A DNA stretch of 63,695 bases, filler included, from Reticulomyxa filosa (Eukaryota; Protista; Foraminifera), in NCBI GenBank assembly GCA_000512085.1. It is 8 parts of 8 records of this genome, joined end to end, with 100 filler letters (N's around TTAATTAATTAA, not from the genome) between each part and the next. Parts side by side here need not be neighbours in the genome. Positions count along the whole stretch, not along the records: positions 37,710 to 60,077 come from ASPP01009302.1; 7 more parts are not named here. One strand, written 5' to 3'. Within the stretch, counting starts at the first letter, position 1; each line of letters starts with the position of its first letter. The notes below the pieces were generated by a model, which ran no database searches, had not been told where the DNA came from, and saw nothing but the letters and a program-made list of their open reading frames with translations. This document shows positions 37,710 through 54,100 of the stretch, piece by piece. Made by a program: the position numbers and the translations under genes.

Positions 37710-37762
37710 TCAGATATTTATAGGGCCTTGCCCTACAGTATTCTGCCATATTTAAACAGAGT

Positions 37763-37886
37763 TACAATCGACCACAAAAAAGACTATTTAAAATACATCA
37801 CTTAAATATTTGCAATTTTTGATGAAAAAAAATTTAAAAAAATGTTAAGTGATGTATTTTAATAGTCTTTTTTGTGGTCGATTGTA
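37763..37886. mobile_element. Small TA-flanked hairpin MITE (about 40-bp inverted arms)
   Basis: TA-caatcgaccacaaaaaagactatttaaaatacatcacttaa ... ttaagtgatgtattttaatagtcttttttgtggtcgattg-TA. The arms differ by one indel. Confidence 0.8.
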
Positions 37887-38211
37887 TAAGTTATTCAGAT
37901 AAATGTTTGTCAGGAAGTTAATATTTGTCCTCAAATAGCTTTAGAAATTTTTGTGGTCATTGTTTAAAAGTTTGTTGATATGAACATCAGCTCGAGCTGT
38001 GGACTTGATCTAATGTTGTACAACATGAAAAAACAAAGTCAGGAGAAAAACTAGACTTTGAGAAAAGAAAAAGGAAGCTACGTTGAGCCAACTTTTTCCG
38101 ATTTAAAGGAGTACTTTTTTAAAATTATTTTATTTTTAGCAAAAAAATATAATCTTAGCATTTTCATTCAATTTTACTTGTCATCACCGGTTTGGAAGCG
38201 AGTTTAGTGCA

Positions 38212-39062
38212 ATGTCGGGTAAGTCATCAAGCAGTCGTGCTCTCACTGTGTGGTAGAGTGAGCAAACACAAAACAAAAAAAACCAAGACACAAAAATAAA
38301 ACAAAAGAAAAGGGAGACGACAAGCAAAACCAAGCCGACAATGAAAAAGTGGAAGAAGAGAAAGTAGAATTTCGTAAAAAATATCCATTTGATTTAGTAG
38401 GAAGAGGAGTGGCAGGAGTGGATGAAATGCGTGAGTATTTGGACGACACAAAAGTATATTTTGGTTTGCTACAAATAAAAGTGGGAACGGGATCGTTTGC
38501 TCGGTCAAAGAATATATTTATTCACTTTAACGGAGATAAGCATCCAAAGCCATTGCAAAGATCACAAGCCAACAAAAAACTGAAAGCGGCCAAAGATATG
38601 ATGAGCCCTTGGCATGCCGAGTTGGTATTAGCAAATAAAAAAGAGTGCACAATAGACGAAATATTTTCTCGAACCAAAAATGCGTTTGTCGCCGATAATT
38701 TGGGAAGCGAGGGAGGAAAACTAGATTTGACTAAAGTTTGGATTATTTGTCTATTTCTATTTTTCTTGCAATTTCCAAATCATTGACTATGCTCTGCACG
38801 CAATATGCATATTGTGAGTGCAAGCCAAGGGTTTCGTTTGTTCTAAAAAGATGACTTTCAAACTGTGTTGGATGATCGGAAACAAAATAAAAACACAGCT
38901 AAAAACCGAATACAAAGAGAAAATGCAACAATTGGCTGCGAAGAAAGAAGAAGAACAAAAAAAATTGGAAGAAGCCAAGCGCAAATTGTTGGAAAAGCAT
39001 AGAGAGGAAGAGAGACGAGTGTTGAGTAAAACAAACACAACACACAAAAAATTATTTTCTGT

Positions 39063-39095
<33 letters not shown>

Positions 39096-40948
39096 GAGGA
39101 AGAACGAATGAAGGCAGAAGCAGAGCGAATCCGCTTGGAAGAGGAGGCGAAGGAAAGAGAGAGACTACGAATTGAAGAGGAAGAGCGACAAAAGCGATTG
39201 CGAGAAGAAGAGGAAGAACGCCAAAAGCGATTGCGAGAAGAACAGGAACGAGAAGAGAGACTTCGTCGCGAACGCGAGGAACAGGCCGAACGAGAACGGA
39301 AAGAAAATGAGGAGCGACAACGACTAGAGGAAGAGAGGAAGAAACAAGAGGAAGAGAAGAAAAAACAAGAGCAAGAAAAATTGGAACGTAAACTAAAAAA
39401 ACAAAAAGAACGCGAAGAAAGAAAGGCGAAAGGGGGCAAGAGATTACTCAAAAAAAAAAAGATGATTGGAGTAACGACAAACCTTGGGATGGCAAACGTG
39501 TTGTGGCTTGTATCCATCAAGAGACTTCACCTCTCAATTGGGCTGTCTTCCAGCCCAGTGACACTGAAATTCTGCCCATGGCCTATGGGCATGGCGACTT
39601 GACCGATTTGAGAAAGTTTTGTCCATATCTGTTTTTTTTTTGCTGTTGTTGTAGTGATTAGCTCCTTCTTTTTTTGTCATTCCTTTTTCTTCCATATCAA
39701 AAAAAAAAAGTGCGTTGCGCGAAGATCAAGTTCAATATGGATTGATGCGCTTGTCATTTGGAGCAGGACGGTTCCGCAGAAGCCATTGGGTGTTCTTTTT
39801 ATGGACCCCTGATTCCATGGCCAGAGATGCACCTCCGCGCTTGCGCACCAAAAAGATCAATGAAAGAGTCAACTGTGCCAATATGCGTGGTGCCATGGAA
39901 AAACTGATAGGTATTGAAGAATGATATATACTTTGTCCAAATAAAACAAAGTACAATTTTATTTTGTTTTGTACTTGTTTACTAACGAAAAGGACCTTAC
40001 GGAGTGTCAATCGTGGCTGAGGAATTCGCAAAAGTCACACTGGAAGAGTGGATTTTACGGGTGAGACAGACAGTGGTTGTGGATGGAGCAGATGAATTTA
40101 TGAATGCTGAGTCCTTCCGGGCTGCACTTCTTGCCGTTTCGTTTCTTTTTGTTGTATTTTGCTAGTGTTGATTAAAAAAATGGCGTATTCCTTTTTTTGA
40201 GCGAGTTGAATAAATCAAAGACACAAGTTTTTGTTCTACAAATATAAACGACAAAATTGGATAGGAAAAAGAACATTTCGCTGCGATGGAAGCTGAGCGT
40301 CTTCGTAAAAAGGAGTTACAACGCATAGCTGGGTTACCAGAAAATGAAGACGACGATGATATGGTCTCTGTTGTTAGTGAAATGGATAATGAAATCAATG
40401 ATGAAATATTAGATAAAGAAGCAGCCACTCCACTTATGGTTGCCCCCTCCACTTCCTCCGAACAAACTATGACATCCTTGACTTTGGAAAATGGAAATAC
40501 GTCGACTAACGAAGAGCCTACAAAAGAGAGTTCCGTCAATCCATCCCAAGAGAGTTCCGCCAATCCACCCCAAGAAACTGCAACACAACCAGCGCCTACT
40601 GATCAACCTCAACAACAACTTGAATCAGGCCAAGCGTCTCAAGCTGTTGCTAGTAAAAGATCTTCTGGAGCGAGTGATATCAATCTTGAAGCTGTTGACT
40701 TTCCTATATACCTTTTTTTTAACTAACATAGTGTCCTCTTTATCCTATTGATCAGCAAAATATATTGCTATTTATGTTTTTAAAAGGTTGCTGACGAGAA
40801 AAAAAAGAAAAAGAAGAATGAAATGACCGAGGAGATGCTCCAAAAAGAATTGCAGTCCAAACTAGTATGGGAAAGTGTCGAACTAGTAAAAAAACCTGAA
40901 GAAGACTTGTGTTGGATTTTAGTTGAACCAAGACTTCCATCGAAATAA
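38212..40948 (+). CDS. Coactosin/ADF-H-domain actin-binding protein with an E/R/K single-alpha-helix linker; first ADF-H domain split between the N- and C-termini
   Basis: GRGVAGVDEMREYLDDTKVYFGLLQIKVGTGSFARSKNIFIHFNG and LNWAVFQP..YGHGDLTDLRNALREDQVQYGLMRLSFGAGRFRRSHWVFFLW match the coactosin pattern. Seven introns inferred; apparent 1-nt frameshift in A11 at 39450-39460. Confidence 0.8.
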
Positions 40949-41593
40949 CCTGTGTAATTCACATTACAGTAGAGAACATGTTTTACATAGATTAGTGTCC
41001 TCACACTGTTTTGAGTATGGTTTGCAGATGTCCAAAATTTTTTTGTAATGAAATTTTGTGTTGTCAAACCATCACTTGCGGCTATTCTCACAAACTTGTC
41101 AAATTTTGCGGCTCTCTGCCAACAATCAGAAATAAATAGTACTTATTGAGCAATTGTGCTCATTTTCAAGGCGTACGAAATAACTTTATTTGCTTTTTCA
41201 ACAGAAATGAATTTGTTAGTGTTTAGTCTCAGCTTATAACATCTTTTAACAACACATACGCAAAAGTGCACAAGTTAAACACAAAATAATTTTCGAGACA
41301 AATAAGAGACGATGAGGAAAACAGCATAAAATCGTTTTTTTTGTCAAGAATTGAGATTAAAAAAAAAAAGCGAAAAACAGCATTGCAAATACACAAAAAG
41401 AAAAGCGAATGAGGAAAAAAAAAAATCGAAACAAATCACTCGAACTTGGGAAAAAAGTGCTTGCGACAAATAAAAAGCAAAGCATTGCTCTAACACTACA
41501 AACTTCACACAAACAGGAACAATAGCTATATTGTTTGGGCAGCACGACAAAAAACAACAGTTTGCTTTTATTTGTTGTTTGTTCATCCAATTT

Positions 41594-44569
41594 CTACATA
41601 ATGGAACAATCACCTCCGCAATCACAGCCTTCACAAGCACAGCCTCCGCATTGTCCACTACCACCGTGACCATGGCCACCACCGCACGCTTTGCAATCAG
41701 CATCACAGGCACCTCCACAACAATCGTCATTGCTGTACAAGTTTTTGGATTTATAAATTTATATAACGTAAGTTAAAAAAAACAAAAAAGTACATGTCAG
41801 GAAGCCCAGAATCGAGCACTGGAATATTTTCGAAAGTGGCTTGGATATCACCGAATGTTGCAGCAGTTGCAGCCAGGGCGATGGCTGTGCCTCCTATAGC
41901 AAGAGCAGAGACAGTTCCTTTATTATTTCTTACAGTCGCCCAGGTTTTGGATTTGACAATGGAATCAAAGCCATCATTGGTTTGATTTTCATCAACTAGT
42001 AATCCTTTTTTTTCCAAATCTTCTTGTCGTGCCTCAAAAGCGATCAAAGACGTGAAGGGTGTGGGAAGGGAGTGCTCGACCGAAGTTTGGACAACTTGGC
42101 GTTCCACTTGTTGGTCCTCCGAAAACCAAGCCTGCGCAGACAATAAATCCAGTTTTTCTTTAATGAAGATTTTGTCAACAGGTAACTTTGTTTTCACAAC
42201 ATTAGCAACAATATTTTGTGTGTTGCCTTGAACATCGAGACCGCGAACCACAATAGTATCAGGTTTGTCATCTTCCTTCTTGTCTTCTTTGGTGTAGCGA
42301 ATTGCTGCAATTACCGGTCCATGTTCGAATAAATCGGGAACAGGGGATGGGTACATTTCCACGTCACTCTCTTGGCACACCACTTCAACATCAGTCAGCA
42401 CCGGTGTGTTTGCCATTTTCAGCAAATGGTCGATTTTTTGGTATATGCGCTCACGATGGGATACAATGTCAGAAAATCCGCGACCCAATTTTGCCAACAT
42501 CTATCGTGATACAACATAAAATACTTTATACATTACCATAAACACTTATGCAATTGCCGTGACTTTATTAAAAGGGACACCTCTTTTACTCAACTTTCAA
42601 AAAAAACCAATTACAATAACTACCAATGCCTAAAGTTAAAAATCTCGTTCGAATTTGCTTTTGTTTGATCTCATTGCAAATTTCTTTTTCATTATGGACA
42701 GCACCATCAGTGATTAACATGATGAACGGTAGCAAGTCGCTTTCTTCCAACACTTCCAATGCTTTTTCAATCGGCGCATCCATGACGGTCCCTCCCTTGG
42801 TTGGACCATATTGCTGAATCCAAGCCTTGGCTGCATTCACATTTTCTTTTGTTGCGCTGATCAAAGTCTGCTTAAAATACATTTGTCGATGATCGAACGA
42901 GCACACACCAAACATGTCAATTTCTCGTAGCCGATCCAGTCCGCGATACAATGCCCTCGTCGCCTCTTGAAACGGTTCTCCTGTCATCGACCCAGAGCGA
43001 TCCAATATGAAAAATATTGCCCGTCCAAACGTTTTTGACAATGATATTGGTGGAGTTACAAACACGCACATCGAATGGCTATCCTTTTGCTCTGTTTCTT
43101 CGTCCTTCTTGCTGATTGCATGTACTACAATCCCTTCTGACTTTACACTAAAGCTTAATTCAAAATCGCGTCCGGTGCTGCTCAAAGGTTCCTTTTTTTT
43201 TTATTGTTTATTCTTATTCTTTGTGTTCCTTTTCCTTTCCCTTCTCTTGCTCAAAAAAAAAAAAAGCAATGCAAACGCACGCATACATATAATTTATATA
43301 TAAGTATACGTTATTCCAAAAAAAAAAAAAAAGCCATTTTCGTATAACTTCAAGTGAGTACATAGGGTGATCGTCTCGATTCCCTTCTGGCACTGGAATG
43401 CATTCGAGAGTCTTTACAATGATGCTTCCATCTTCCAGTTTTTTGGTGCTAACCTCGTGAGAACGAACTTTTACCTGATGTAATCGTGTTTTTTTTTGTT
43501 ATTTACCAAATTGTAATGTGTTGCCTTTTTTGAAAAACATGTACGTTCTAAGCGTGCAAAAAAAAAAAACCAAGGAGAATCCCAAATTATGGGCAAAAAA
43601 AAAAGTACTATGTATGTAAAATATTTGAAAACATACCTTAGTATTGGACGACAGTGCATTAATCTTGCATCTGACCTGGACAACATCCTCCCATTTAACA
43701 TTTTCGACAATAGCGCCTTTCGGAAAGTACAATGGAATCGAAAGTGCATAGCCTGTCTTATAGTATTCCAAGGTTTGTAAGTAATAACAACTCACGTGTA
43801 TCGTTTCACCACTTTTCACTCCATTGAATGGTAATCGAAATAAATCTGGGATATGTTGATCAGGTGGCAAATCAAATTCAGGTGTACCACCAACTTGCTC
43901 TTTTTTCTTGCTTTTGTTTTGGTTGCCCTAAAGCCACAAAAAAAAATTGCTTTCTTTGTATACTTTTTTCCTCCCCCTTTTTACCTCAATTATTTCGTTT
44001 TTGTCTTTATTCGAAACCACTGCTGTTGTTAATACTCGGTCTTCGCCGATTCGCAATGACACACTCATCACTGTTCCTGACGTTGGTAGCAAAAATATGC
44101 AGTTTAACTGATTATTGTTATTTATTTTATTTTTTATTTTTATTGTTTGTTTTTTTTTTGGTGGGGTCATGATCATTGAATACGTAAACATTTCAAAAAA
44201 AAAGGAGACAAGAAAGCACAAGGAAAGGCAGCACAAAGAAAAAAGTAATTTTTTTCTTGTCCGAAACTGTTTTATCGGTTTGATTGGTCCATTTTCCTTT
44301 CATGGAAATGATTGCAGTTGATACATAGCATTCAACATCTACTTGCAGTTTCTCACAGTGAATTGAAAACAGTTGCGTGACGCTGTCTTCTTGGTCTTGA
44401 AACATTATTACCGGACACAATGGCCGAAATCCATCAAACCCGTCCATATTTGCCTTTGTATGATACCCTAGAAATGGAACAACCAAATTTTTCTTAAAAA
44501 TTTCACAAAAGGGTCACAAAAACTAGTTTCAAAGTTAAACTTTTAACTATCTCGTTCTGACCGATTCAT
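41594..44569 (-). CDS. VIT-VWA (VWA5A / inter-alpha-trypsin-inhibitor-related) protein with a Cys/Gly-rich CaaX tail
   Basis: IFFILDRSGSMTG (MIDAS DxSxS), GGTVMDAPI, IMLITDG, LGIGSYCNWFFL, YPSPVPDLF, TPFTSLIAFE. Last exon NDDCCGGACDADCKACGGGHGHGGSGQCGGCACEGCDCGGDCSIM*. Start codon tentative. Confidence 0.85.
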
Positions 44570-48136: not shown

Positions 48137-51100
48137 TTACCACATTTGTCGCCAATTTCTTTGATCGTTTGTTATCACATTGTCTGAAGTTCCAAAAGAG
48201 TAATCGTTTCCATCACTTGCCCATAAATTTGAGTACGCAATATTATTTTCTTGATGATTTTCGTCAGTTGTTTCATTTCTTGTGTTGTTTGCCAAAGCCA
48301 TTGGCGCGAAGTTGTTGCTACTATAAAGCTGAGGCGCACTTGAAGGATTATCATAATAGTCATAAAATGCCTCTCTATGAGGAGGAAGGCCTGCATCTCG
48401 AAATTGGTTATGCACTAATTGCATTCCTGTAGGCTGGAGATGTTCTAATGTATAAGGCACGTTAAATTGGATTGTTTGATGAACTAAAGAAGTATCATCA
48501 TCACCCGGGCGAATTTGCTGTGCGAAGTTTCGAAGGCACATTTCGTTAAAACGTATCTGTTGTTAGTTACATACATTGGAACTTTTTTAAATGTTATTAC
48601 ATTATTTTTTGAAAACATAACAAACCAAAATAATAGGTTTTATTGAAGGAAACATTTGCACTAAGTCTTGAACTCGTAGTGCCACTGCGTCCTATTAATT
48701 TGTTGTATTCGTACGCAGATTTTGTTACAAGCACTGAACAACACAGAAATATTTTCACGCATACCCTTGCACTCGTTCTCTGCAATATCATTTGCGCTAC
48801 AAATACATTGATAGAAGGAAAAGCACACAAGAATACTTCATCATTTGTTTCAAATTCCGTCAAAAATGTGTTAATGGAAATCTGTTTTTTTTCAAGACAC
48901 CAAGATTACAAGGAACAACTTTTAAAAAATCAGGAAAGAACAAAAATGCCAAAATATTACCTCCAGATTCGAATTATCAACTGACATCTGAGTAGTGTCC
49001 AATGTAGTGAGATTGTCGTCAGCACATTGTTGGCTTTGAGGCTTGGCAATCATTTGAGTTGTTGGGTATTCGCTTTGTATTAAATCACATATGATGCTAG
49101 GCACAAATTGTAAAGGATAAAACACGGTATGGATTTTGACATTAAAATCTTTGAATACATTTGACAAATTTGCCATTAATTTTACTATCACCTTGTGAAA
49201 AAATTCGTGTTTGCCAGCATAATTTCTATATTTTGATATATTTTAACCTTTTATTTGTATCACTTCAAAAAAAAGGAATTGATGTGTCGTCAAAATAGAC
49301 TACATACGGCGATGAGCTGTTGGTGCACAGCAAAACATGACAATTGACGTATTGATAATAACATCTAAAAACACGGCCAATTAAGTTTTGAATGTCATCT
49401 CTTGTTTGGGGAGCTGATGTCAAACTCAAATTACATAAAATCACACATGTGTTGGGGCTAATGATTAATGTCTCTGCTGTAAGAGCTCGCTTAAATAGTA
49501 CAATGTTACAATATCCTAAGGCCCGAATTAGTGACTCTGGTATCCATGTATGAGGATTATTGGTGCAAATCAAGGCAATCTTTTGACTAAAGCAGCGAGA
49601 CAATTGTACTTCCACAAAATCTGATTCAGCCGAGTCAAATTTTACGAGTTCCTCTCTGTGAAGTATTTATCATCACTTGTGCTATGAAAAGAAGATTAAA
49701 TTAAAAAAAGTTAACATGAATGTCAGATCGACTGATGACTTGAATACGACAACGTGTATGCTCTGTTTATCCAGAGTAACAACACTGTCTTTAATGGACT
49801 CGAATACACTGGTATCAAAGCAAATTAACCGAACAATTGACTCCAGGAATGTTTTTATACTGGGTATATCTGGTTTTTGGACAATCTCATTAAATACTGC
49901 AGCGGTGCTTACGAAACAGCAGCAGTTCTCGTCACTCAGCTCTCTGTATTGACAGCAAGTCCACGTATGTGATATATTGAAAACGCAACAAGAAGCAAAC
50001 GCAAAAACTACACATGATAGCATTGGCGTGCTCTGCTTTCTGAATAAAAGAAACTCCTTTGGTTACGTTCTTTTGCTGCAAAGATTTTTCAATGAATCCA
50101 ATGACGACTGCTTTGTCAAATAAAACGACTGTTTTTGTTTTAGACTTTGTATCAGTCGAGTGGACTAATGTCGAAATTACTTCAAAGATACGGGTCAACT
50201 TTGGATCAATCGAGAGTTGCCCGTTTGCATTTTCATTCTGTTTTTCAAAGGGCAGCAAATCTCTAAGAGGATGGTGTCTCAAAGCAAAAAATAAACAAAA
50301 GTACCGCTATCTCGGACATTGCACCAAGTAATAATGAAATGGCGTCTTTGCTTTCAAAATATGACAAATGTTTGTGGTACCATTTGTCATTGAGCAATTT
50401 CTTCACAAAAGCCAATGCTACTAAAATCTTTAGTATTCATCACGTTTACAGATTATTTTACAGAAAACGATACACCAAAAAGAAGAAGAAAAAACTGACG
50501 CTGCTGTGGATAATATAATCTCGGACGTGCACAAGTGCATAAACAATGACAATGTGTCGCAGTACTTCCTCGTGTCTCTGACGCACTGAGCGGACAAAAA
50601 AGCATTTTGCATAGATATTTTTTTACAAATAGTCCAAATATACAAATTGCAAACAAAGTCAATAAATTACCTATCTCGGTTTCATAAAGCATTGTATCTT
50701 GTTTTTGCTCAGTCGCTTCTTTTACCATTTTTCTATAAGTTTTGACGGAATACAACCTTATAATAAACTTTTGAACACAGCGTTCATAAAGGAAAAAATA
50801 GACAAATTACGTGATTCGCTCTGCTTCGATAGTGAACACAGTTTCATGGTTAGCGATCAATCCGAAGGTTTTCAATTGTCTTGCTAACATGATAGTTTAT
50901 TTATTGAATGTAGAAAAGGCTAAGGGAAATAATTCAAATTAAACACAAAACAAAACTGAATGGCTTTGCACATTCGCTCAACACGGTCAATACATCTCTT
51001 TGGGCAACGGATAGTGGAAATTCCACAATTTTCGTCTTTTTTTTCACAATTTTTTCTTTTTCCAATTTTTGCTTGAATTTGACAAAACCAATGTCCGATT

Positions 51101-54100
51101 CTTGCGCTTTTAAATTTTCAATCAGCTCTTTATCTGTCATTCGTCGATGTGGCTTTAGTTTTGACGTTGTTGAGGGCATAACACCACTCTTGGACGCATC
51201 ATCTAAAGCACTAATATTTTCATTATGTTTAGAAGGCAAGATATCGGTTGCGTTTTGCAACCGAACTCTTTTGGTGGCAGGTGCCTAAATCACAACAATA
51301 TGAGCGCATACATATTTTTTGTTTTCCCTTTTGATATTGATGTCTCAAAAAGATACATGAAGATTATCAAGTTCTGCAGTGGCTATTGATCTCTTCTTAT
51401 CAGCGCTAATGTTTCCAATAGCGTCAGGTTTTTTTGATACTATTGAGTTGTCTTGAGATGAACTTGAGATTACATTTAAAGCTTGTTCGTCATCTTCGGC
51501 GTCTTCTTTAATTCTGTCTAATTCCAAAAACTGCGTTTTGTTGTGCAATGCAATTCGTGGATGGGTGTTACTCTTATTTATATTATTGATCTCAACCATT
51601 TTTGCAGGCATGTCCAATTTTTCTACTGGTTGTGTGGTTGTGCAAAGGATGCCACTACTCGGTTCCGTATTTTCATTCATTTGTCCAGACAAATTGGTTT
51701 TTATTTCCAAGTCTGCAAAACAAAAAAAGAAGCATGTCAGTAGTATAAATATTCCATTCTGCTGGAAAGAGTGAAATTGTCTCCAAAGTTTTATTCTTTT
51801 CATTTTAATTTTTTAACTGTTTGTGCTTTTTCTGGACTCTGATTGCTGTTGGAGATTATCTTGAGGTTGCATCTTCGAAGCAAATTGTGCATTCGCACTC
51901 TGATCTACGCAAGCAATGAAATAATGTAAATCAAATACAGTATCTATAATATAAAAAGCAGACAAGGAAACCTGGATTGTGTACTGTGACCAATTGCTTG
52001 TTGAGATCTCTAGGTCTATTCTGGGACAAATTCTGTTTATTTTGTTTTTTGATAACTTTTTTTGAAGAAATACCATACAAAAATAAACAAACAATTTGTT
52101 CTTTCACAGACCATGGAACCATTGTTGACATTGTCATTAGCACTATATCCACCTGAACATTGACATAATGTGAATTTGTTCTTCTGTTTGGAAAAAAAAA
52201 ATAATCCTTACTTCGGTTACCTTGAAACGCCAACTGAATTTTCTTCAATTCTTCTGCGCATATTTGGTCCGTCAGCGGTTCTTGCATTATCTCGGAGTAA
52301 TTCATCATGGAGTGCTGTGACAAACAGTCGCTATTCAACTGGCTAAGCATGTCATTGTTCTGATAATCTTTTGCTTGTGCTGGATTCTGACTGGCTAAGT
52401 TGTTTTTGGAATCTCGAACGCAAGTGGAGCTTGCATTGGAACAAATGCTATCTTCTTCCGATTCTTCACTGCGTTATGTTTTGTTTTTTTACTTTTTTTC
52501 TTAACAAAATCGGCAATGTCCACGTTTCCTTAGCTGTGGACAACGTTCACATCAAATTAGCATTTGCAATGTATTTGTTTACAGCAAACCTATCAAACAA
52601 AATGGTGTCGAATCTACTCCAATCATTTGCAAAAAACTGGGACGGTTTGAATTCATTGAGATCTGTTGCAATTATAGCTGTCGAGAACTCATTCGCACAA
52701 CTATTTGTACTTAGCATTAGGTGCACTGTGTCTGCAATTAATTGATATTTTGTTGCTATCACTCCATTTTCGTAAGAAATTCTCCCAGCAAATCTCTGAA
52801 TGGAATTAAAACTTCACTACCGCTTTGCAAAATAGAATTTGGAATGAAGTAATCATTTGGGAATAACTCGAATAACGACTTGATGATGTGATCGTAAGCG
52901 AGATAATTGGGTGCGTTTTCTTGGCATTTTTGCAGCCAATCATTTTCTTCTTCTGAAAGTGTTGTTATCCATCAGAGCAAGCCAAACAAATTCAGGTCAG
53001 TTTTATTAACATTGTAAAAAAAAGAGATCCAGACCTGTTAAACTAAGGTTCTTGAGTGAAAACGGTTGTGGTCCGCTTGAATCGTTCCAAAACAACTGAC
53101 ATTGACTTTCGTGCAGGTCTTCCGACTGTGTTCCTTTTGCTTCTAGTAGCTTGTGGGACGTTTGTGAAAACGAATGTATCATACTTTTGGAGATTTCTTC
53201 AGCATTCCAAGGACAGTCATCTGAATTTAAAAAAAAATAAAAATCTAAAGTGTAAAACGAAAAAATTTTTTCTCACTTTGTGGGGTGTTTTCGAATAATA
53301 CGTAGTCAATCATTGATTCTTGTGACTTTCTCCAATGTTGCAAAGCTTCAAGTTCTTCACATTCTAGTATTCGATCGACGGAAATACCTAACGGAAACCG
53401 TTCAAATTCGCTTGTATAATCAGCTATTTCATCGAATAGCATGTTCTCCCAGTAGTCGCTCCTGTATGTAGTATCATCTAACACTTTCAAAAAAAACTTA
53501 AAGAAGAAAATAAGTACTCCACTGTTCGTCCAAGTCCAGGATAAAATTGCTTGCGATTGCTGAGTCCAATGGCAGACATTGACAAAGCAAACCGACAAGC
53601 GATGTCCAAAGATTGAAGGTGCTGAGTTGAGGACTTGTTTTACGATGAGCCGATAGACGCAATAAATCAAAGCTTATGGCGTCAATAGTGTCAGAAGGGA
53701 TCCAAAATAATTCGTTGTCATCGAATAGAGTCGATGGAATTTCAAACTCACATATATCACATATTCTTCGTTTTGGTGCTGTTGCTTTGACCTCTCTTCC
53801 TTCAAGGGAAAAGAACCTTTTCAGTGAATATTTGCAAATACCAACAGCCATTTATTTTTCAAAAGGTGAAAGTGAATTTTTGAAAATACATAACTTTGTG
53901 TGGTACATTGTCAATTCTCTGCTGAAGGTGTTTGAATAATAGGAAAGCATCGAGAATTCATTCGTGCTGAATGATAGAGCAGTTTTTTGGGCTTGTGCAA
54001 CTGAGACAATTATTTGAAAAGCGTCCTTCCACTCGGCCTTCCAAAACCGAGCACTTTCAAAAGGAATTTCGGGTAATGCATAAAATTTTAGCTCAATCTG

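Follow-up and report, generated by a model that had tools for sequence, protein, structure and literature searches.

It was found that a plus-strand gene at positions 38212–40948 of the window (the whole analysed stretch of 63,695 nucleotides, composed of eight joined parts of the Reticulomyxa filosa genome) very probably encodes a member of an unnamed family of double ADF-H proteins of the drebrin/Abp1/coactosin type, in which domain 1 is built from both ends of the chain and closed in cis. The predicted product of 670 aa, counted with an X at a frameshift, consists in order of a short leader, an ADF-H domain without helix 1 and strand 1, linker 1, a complete ADF-H domain, linker 2, and a C-terminal element of one helix and one strand with a tryptophan (Trp, predicted residue 660). 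In the proposed arrangement, the C-terminal helix and strand would fold back into domain 1 as its missing helix 1 and strand 1; the chain would close into a loop, with domain 1 assembled from both module ends; and the two linkers would lie side by side, their common length setting the distance between the two ADF-H heads, which are putative F-actin binders. The initial annotation of this gene had proposed that its two ends complement each other, and this proposal is now supported by conservation across a whole family, by a deletion control on the structural model of a relative (P0008), and by the co-variation of the two linkers.

The domains of the Reticulomyxa protein were delimited with several profiles, searched exon by exon, for which the exons are numbered as in Table 1. 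Exon 2 matches Pfam PF00241 Cofilin_ADF with an E-value of 1.3e-5 and 25.4 bits (gathering cut-off 22.4) over profile positions 32–123 of 125, that is, domain 1 lacks profile positions 1–31, and its alignment with Entamoeba coactosin 4liz sets in only at residue 34 of the latter. The same exon covers positions 27–131 of 134 of the hidden Markov model (HMM) of the family's ADF-H domain and positions 8–118 of the full-family HMM (E 2.9e-38), and the domain 1 core, at about 38385–38711, begins at strand 2 with the motif PFDLVGRGVAG. Domain 2 is complete: exons 4, 5, and 6 match the ADF-H HMM at positions 3–45, 38–82, and 101–133 of 134, and exon 5 alone reaches 17.6 bits against Pfam Cofilin_ADF (positions 48–83). 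Both the late start of the first domain and the completeness of the internal one had been asserted in the initial annotation and agree with these profiles. With the full-family HMM, the remaining matches are at positions 137–208 (exon 4), 201–244 (exon 5, E 3.1e-15), 264–313 (exon 6, E 5.8e-5), and 324–370 (exon 8), so that the window exons follow the profile in collinear order.

Meanwhile, the two linkers are wholly unlike in composition. Linker 1, already noticed as a long E/R/K tract between the domains, has 181 aa, of which 66% are E, R, or K, a net charge of +4, and a longest unbroken run of E, R, K, Q, A, M, and L of 44 aa; its composition is that of an ER/K single alpha-helix, for which it is a candidate. 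Linker 2, with a net charge of about −18, is acidic, has a high content of S, T, P, Q, and N, and is probably disordered. The Pfam scan of every exon gave no SH3 domain and no family besides Cofilin_ADF, with no family in exon 7 (linker 2) and no match in the last exon.

A check suggested with the initial annotation was whether other protists have the same permuted layout, and such a layout was indeed found in many proteins. A word search with exon 2 retrieved three foram-type relatives, in each of which RKK-PF-L-GRGVAG is immediately preceded by a low-complexity leader with an initial Met. With domain 1 as the query, an exhaustive representative search yielded 377 clusters at E ≤ 1e-3, of which 181 were at E ≤ 1e-10; the majority of the 377 have two matched stretches, the first starting a few residues from the N-terminus. 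The shared layout was established by inspection of the ends, by a motif count, and by an alignment of 40 sequences (A1): a leader, an ADF-H domain from strand 2 on, linker 1, a complete ADF-H domain, linker 2, and a helix followed by ...N-W-x-L..., after whose Trp the chain usually terminates within 6–13 residues. In A1, the Trp in strand 1 of domain 2 is invariant, as is the C-terminal one (W376). With HMMs cut from A1, the three-part module was detected in at least 90 proteins; the first domain of 90 members starts at ADF-H HMM position 20 or later, and the conserved module has about 340 aa in most members. Full-length relatives match Pfam Cofilin_ADF with E-values down to 1e-27. The Reticulomyxa protein shows every feature of this plan, namely the start at strand 2, the complete domain 2, the C-terminal helix and Trp strand, and linkers of similar length.

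Members come from diplonemids (Diplonema ambulator, D. papillatum, Lacrimia, Namystynia, and Flectonema), the prasinophyte Pyramimonas, the choanoflagellate Didymoeca costata, and the foraminiferan Reticulomyxa; many further members are metatranscriptome proteins, and compact marine picoeukaryotes are also represented. A feature search of the Atlas, which provides leads only, found Cofilin_ADF clusters to be commonest in Euglenozoa and Chytridiomycota. The named members are annotated as 'hypothetical', and the Reticulomyxa entry as 'actin binding protein, partial'. One member, P0170 (a cluster of 146 members), is an uninterrupted open reading frame (ORF) of 384 aa on compact Tara scaffolds, 62 bp and 15 bp from unrelated neighbours; its start is at strand 2 and the chain has just six residues beyond the Trp, and such a single, tightly packed ORF excludes hidden exons as a general explanation of the layout. 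In addition, two myosins that contain Myosin_head and MyTH4 domains, P0071 (2407 aa) and P0094 (2596 aa, also with FKBP), have the module as their tail at the C-terminus, and it is fused to Calx-beta in P0139 or to PH in P0117, always with the same boundaries. Since the module moves between proteins with both halves, it is most simply one folding unit. No description of a split double-ADF-H tail on myosins was found in the literature searched, and no paper on the split layout itself was found there either, which is not proof that none exists; the family is apparently undescribed. Judged from the sequences, the split layout is the signature of a large, widespread, and portable family and not a peculiarity of one gene.

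The likeness of the C-terminus to the missing helix and strand was claimed in the initial annotation as a gapless alignment; this likeness is insignificant in pairwise sequence comparison but significant at the profile level. BLASTP of the last exon against the exon with helix 1 and strand 1 of domain 2 gave no alignment, and the sole match of the last exon in a sequence search of the PDB was a designed helical protein (E 0.08), which is irrelevant. An HMM of the C-terminal block was then considered, with 30 positions, from 40 relatives and with no Reticulomyxa sequence, which was searched against 911 stop-to-stop ORF pieces of the contig. The last exon ranks first of the 911 (E 1.6e-5), and the exon with helix 1 and strand 1 of domain 2 ranks second (E 1.3e-4); it follows that the element is a family feature and homologous to the normal ADF-H start. 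A two-chain prediction of exon 2 domain 1 together with the C-terminal exon scored 0.72 in three runs, but one control with an unrelated protein of 45 aa also scored 0.72, so that the score carries no weight either way.

A view of the docking can be obtained from the predicted structure of P0008, a protein of 383 aa with 36% identity to the domain 1 found in the window, which was modelled by AlphaFold2 with alignment A1. The model has a mean predicted local distance difference test score (pLDDT) of 87.4 and a predicted template modelling score of 0.64. Domain 1 has strands at 29–35, 52–60, 67–75, and 106–110, domain 2 has five strands, and the linkers contain long helices at 144–166 and 319–356; the C-terminal element forms a helix (360–368) and a strand (376–381) with pLDDT above 90. 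In the deletion control, residues 357–383 and their equivalents were cut from all 40 sequences (alignment A2) and the protein was refolded; the only loss was the domain-1 strand 29–35, which becomes coil, and domain 2 was unchanged. The loss of this strand upon removal of the tail indicates that the C-terminal strand pairs by hydrogen bonds with the first strand of domain 1, and it may be deduced from the models that it occupies the place of strand 1 in the normal ADF-H hairpin. The same docking is presumed for the Reticulomyxa protein. Domain 2 of this relative's model has the ADF-H fold and superposes on coactosin-like protein 1t2l with a Z of 15.8 and a root-mean-square deviation of 2.3 Å over 124 residues. 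VIA-align and Foldseek match domain 2 only, because sequential aligners cannot follow a split domain, and the shape search of the ESM Atlas gave no match to the whole module, only single-domain matches (template modelling score 0.35 by query).

The lengths of the two linkers co-vary across the family. For 89–90 members, the Spearman correlation between linker 1 and linker 2 is 0.63–0.64 (p ~1e-11), the median absolute difference is 6 aa, and the family medians are 46 and 42 aa, respectively; phylogenetically independent contrasts, computed on a tree built solely from the domain cores, give an r of 0.66, a value reached by none of 10,000 permutations. In Reticulomyxa, the linkers are about 180 and about 176 aa in HMM coordinates (181 and 164 aa by motif boundaries), so both are expanded about four-fold relative to the family. 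As these two linkers differ wholly in composition, gene conversion between repeats cannot explain the match in length. If the module closes in cis, linker 2 must bridge the span of linker 1.

Such co-variation also bears on complementation in trans, that is, three-dimensional domain swapping, in which the tail would enter domain 1 of another molecule and yield dimers or head-to-tail chains with a spacing set by the long linkers, the self-assembling ruler of the initial annotation. The sequence facts allow for this, since the insert is carried at the tip of a long flexible linker, and a stiff E/R/K helix of 181 aa in Reticulomyxa would disfavour closure in cis. However, co-variation is predicted by cis closure with side-by-side linkers and is not required by open chains; the AlphaFold2 monomer models of P0008 close in cis; and the module enters myosins and other proteins as one unit with both halves always present, so that complementation in trans is considered unlikely. 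There is likewise a small chance that closure is reversible and that the tail may swap into another molecule, in which case the E/R/K helix of about 25–30 nm would give a head-to-tail chain, a self-assembling actin cross-linker or ruler of fixed spacing for the reticulopodial network; if closure is reversible, the clasp would switch the two-headed module open and closed in the members with short linkers. Closure in cis remains the preferred arrangement of the module.

The gene lies in the piece of the window at 37710–60077 (22,368 bp, about 35% guanine plus cytosine), and its features are shown in Table 1. The ends stated in the initial annotation were retained, with ATG at 38212 and TAA at 40946–40948. 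The model was obtained by reading the three forward frames and then aligning the transcript contigs of four public runs, which derive from 90–100%-identical relatives. Short GT..AG introns occur throughout the gene, and prokaryote-style ORF lists therefore display exons alone. Six of the seven introns, the last one included, are GT..AG joints seen in or derivable from the spliced contigs of relatives: the joints 38735|38899, 39615|39711, 39910|39993, 40135|40265, and 40693|40787 are found in spliced contigs, of which 40135|40265 is present in a 100%-identical contig of run X4, and the intron at 39021–39094 was derived from the record lengths of contig 11 of run X3. A run of about 35 A (39057–39094) ends this third intron, and reads are reported as cut there. 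Exon 4 is covered unspliced by contigs over 39118–39436 and 39450–39616, with the joint from 39615 to 39711/12 confirmed, and domain 2 begins within it at about 39491.

Table 1. Exons and the frame change of the split double-ADF-H gene in the window.
Feature	Position	Strand	Evidence or remark
Putative mini-exon 1 (ATG TCG G)	38212–38218	+	GTAAGT donor at 38219; start codon inferred
Exon 2: acidic leader and N-truncated ADF-H domain 1	38308–38735	+	Pfam, family HMM; donor confirmed by spliced contig
Exon 3: start of linker 1, K/E-rich helix-type	38899–39020	+	Joint 38735 to 38899 seen; end at 39020 inferred
Exon 4: E/R/K-rich bulk of linker 1, then domain-2 helix 1, strand 1 (Trp), and strand 2	39095–39615	+	
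A11 run at frame change (−1)	39450–39460	+	From the E/R/K frame to the domain-2 frame
Exon 5: domain-2 strands 3–4 and start of long helix	39711–39910	+	Both joints confirmed
Exon 6: end of domain 2 (strand 5, last helix) and start of linker 2	39993–40135	+	Family HMM
Exon 7: linker 2	40265–40693	+	Both joints GT..AG; composition
Exon 8: K run, C-terminal helix and Trp strand (about 40850–40945, with CWILVEP), TAA	40787–40948	+	C-terminal block HMM

The first intron and the start codon at 38212 are putative. Exon 2 has no in-frame ATG ahead of the conserved core; the mini-exon ATGTCGG (38212–38218) stays in frame with acceptors at 38308 or 38317, and an in-frame TAG lies upstream of its ATG at 38137–38139. 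The single contig spanning this region, from a relative, covers 38123–38156, continues with 62 unaligned letters, and resumes at 38313, and this gap fits an exon ending at 38218 with an acceptor at 38308, 38313, or 38317. The possible acceptors lie 4–5 nt apart, with AG at 38306–38307, 38311–38312, and 38315–38316; only the first and third are in frame from the ATG at 38212, and the relative's contig corresponds to the middle one. The public NCBI model P0001 (38058–38786, 207 aa, partial) absorbs the upstream ORF and the first intron and ends in intron 2, and therefore lacks everything from linker 1 through to the C-terminal element; the translation of exon 2 is identical to this entry. The 5' part of P0001, which runs from the upstream ORF into exon 2, was rejected as a model, as it implies 51 letters between 38156 and 38313, where the transcript contig has 62.

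It might be asked whether the split arises from an incomplete gene model, with an unseen upstream exon completing domain 1 or with the last exon starting a third ADF-H domain. Only about 500 bp lie between the edge of the piece and the ATG, the first intron and start codon are putative, and P0001 is marked partial. However, four close relatives and dozens of distant ones begin with Met and a short leader directly before strand 2, the single ORF of P0170 has no room for more exons, and an in-frame stop lies upstream of the ATG. At the other end, one contig of a relative spans the junction of 40693 with 40787 and is then unspliced as far as 40954, beyond the TAA, and the C-terminal exon therefore belongs to the gene. 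In the roughly 490 bp between the stop codon and the last exon of the convergent neighbour, no ADF-H match was found and all frames are full of stops, so that a third domain completed downstream is very unlikely. Neither of the exons that would have overturned the initial annotation is thus to be expected, and an artefact of this kind is regarded as extremely improbable.

Meanwhile, a frame change of −1 is required in exon 4 between 39392 and 39460, that is, between the E/R/K linker and domain 2. In addition to the lack of an ATG in exon 2 ahead of the conserved core, this frameshift would be compatible with a decaying pseudogene, a Reticulomyxa copy that is no longer translated as a whole. 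It was found, however, that a relative's contig has no indel in 39225–39435 or 39450–39616 but one extra letter between GGGGG at 39432–39436 and position 39450, just ahead of the A11 run, which would restore the reading frame; the orthologues P0017 and P0005 continue in frame from the K/R run into DDW..., and homopolymer miscounts are common in draft assemblies. The frame change is thus probably a homopolymer length error of the assembly at the A11 run. The exons are otherwise open, with collinear matches to the family profile, and near-identical relatives have spliced transcripts; decay of the gene is accordingly held to be highly unlikely.

Several points weigh against closure in cis as proposed for this protein. 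The docking of the tail beside strand 29–35 is deduced from the deletion control and not read off the model, and the AlphaFold2 models show P0008, a 36%-identical relative, and not the Reticulomyxa protein. The equality of linker lengths could stem in part from a common origin as repeats of a tandem array and not from a structural constraint. If linker 1 is rigid, at about 27 nm, cis closure would stretch the disordered linker 2 to nearly half of its contour length. The actin binding of all members is putative, and the frameshift in exon 4 together with the insecure start codon leaves a very slight chance that the Reticulomyxa copy is a pseudogene.

The relationship of the family to known ADF-H proteins was examined with its profile and with the model of P0008. 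Among solved structures, the family profile matches drebrin-like 1x67 best (E 1.3e-17), followed by drebrin 5y1z (2.2e-13) and yeast Abp1 1hqz (1.6e-8), with coactosins also close. With Abp1, drebrin, and the drebrin-like protein (mAbp1, HIP-55), the family shares motifs of the type G-x-G...E-M and V-K-R-G and a charged helical region after the domain; however, Abp1 and drebrin have one contiguous N-terminal ADF-H domain with SH3 or drebrin-specific regions, while the Reticulomyxa protein has two ADF-H domains, the first one split, and no SH3. It therefore falls within the ADF-H superfamily by the PF00241 profile and outside the Abp1/drebrin class. Coactosin is close in that domain 2 of the P0008 model superposes on the human coactosin-like protein and domain 1 of the window aligns to Entamoeba coactosin, but coactosin is a single domain of about 140 aa whose first 33 residues fall outside the alignment with domain 1 of the window.

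Twinfilin likewise has two ADF-H domains joined by a linker, and 7ccc_B is the top Foldseek match over both domains. Unlike in the split module, both twinfilin domains are complete and contiguous, and the C-terminal element of helix and strand is absent; the Reticulomyxa domain 1 starts only at ADF-H HMM position 27 of 134 and Pfam position 32 of 125. No twinfilin chain appeared at E 0.01 in the family-profile search of solved structures, a similarity well below that of drebrin and coactosin.

Non-permuted tandem proteins of the same ADF-H subtype are also known from the search, with two complete domains in P0146, three in P0028 and P0054, and six in P0129. These have similar inter-domain linkers but a normal helix 1 and strand 1 at the start, a complete domain at the end, and no split domain, and they are possibly of the ancestral type of the split module. 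Exactly the split module results when a tandem array is cut twice, each time behind strand 1, with the second cut two domains beyond the first, and the layout may thus have arisen through permutation by duplication, in which a tandem ADF-H array lost its two ends. Natural circular permutation by duplication and truncation is exemplified by swaposin in comparison with saposin, where an N-terminal piece of the fold is found at the C-terminus, for which trimming of a tandem duplication on both sides is the simplest explanation. Unlike in swaposin, the permuted parts of the split module are separated by two long linkers and an entire second domain, which would give a closed two-headed loop.

In the neighbourhood of the gene, an inverted repeat is found upstream of the putative start, at a distance of about 330 bp; its 30-nt arms (37763–37792 and 37857–37886) are 97% complementary and separated by 64 nt, and it could be a small hairpin element or a remnant resembling a miniature inverted-repeat transposable element. 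A convergent gene encoding a von Willebrand factor type A domain follows on the minus strand at 41344–43185, in which the ORF at 42586–43185 matches VWA_3, VWA_2, and VWA with E-values of about 1e-9; a relative's contig is spliced from about 41797 to 41736, with the last exon of this gene at about 41439–41736. Further weak ADF-H-like matches of the family HMM, to short ORF pieces on the plus strand at 50434–50586 (E about 0.01) and 51341–51406 (E above 1), have no supporting exons nearby and were judged to be chance.

ADF-H proteins are usually sorted into five classes, namely ADF/cofilin, twinfilin, Abp1/drebrin, coactosin, and GMF; if the arrangement proposed here is true, the split family would be a further and widely distributed class. 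Its discontinuous domain looks like a natural permutation by duplication with a whole second domain inside the loop. Domain scans detect only one and a half domains in these proteins, which are consequently called hypothetical, and their occurrence in ecologically important protists and in the tails of MyTH4 myosins suggests that they may represent a common but unnoticed mode of actin coupling. The co-varying linkers suggest that the paired linkers set the spacing of two putative actin-binding heads, with Reticulomyxa at the long extreme of the family.

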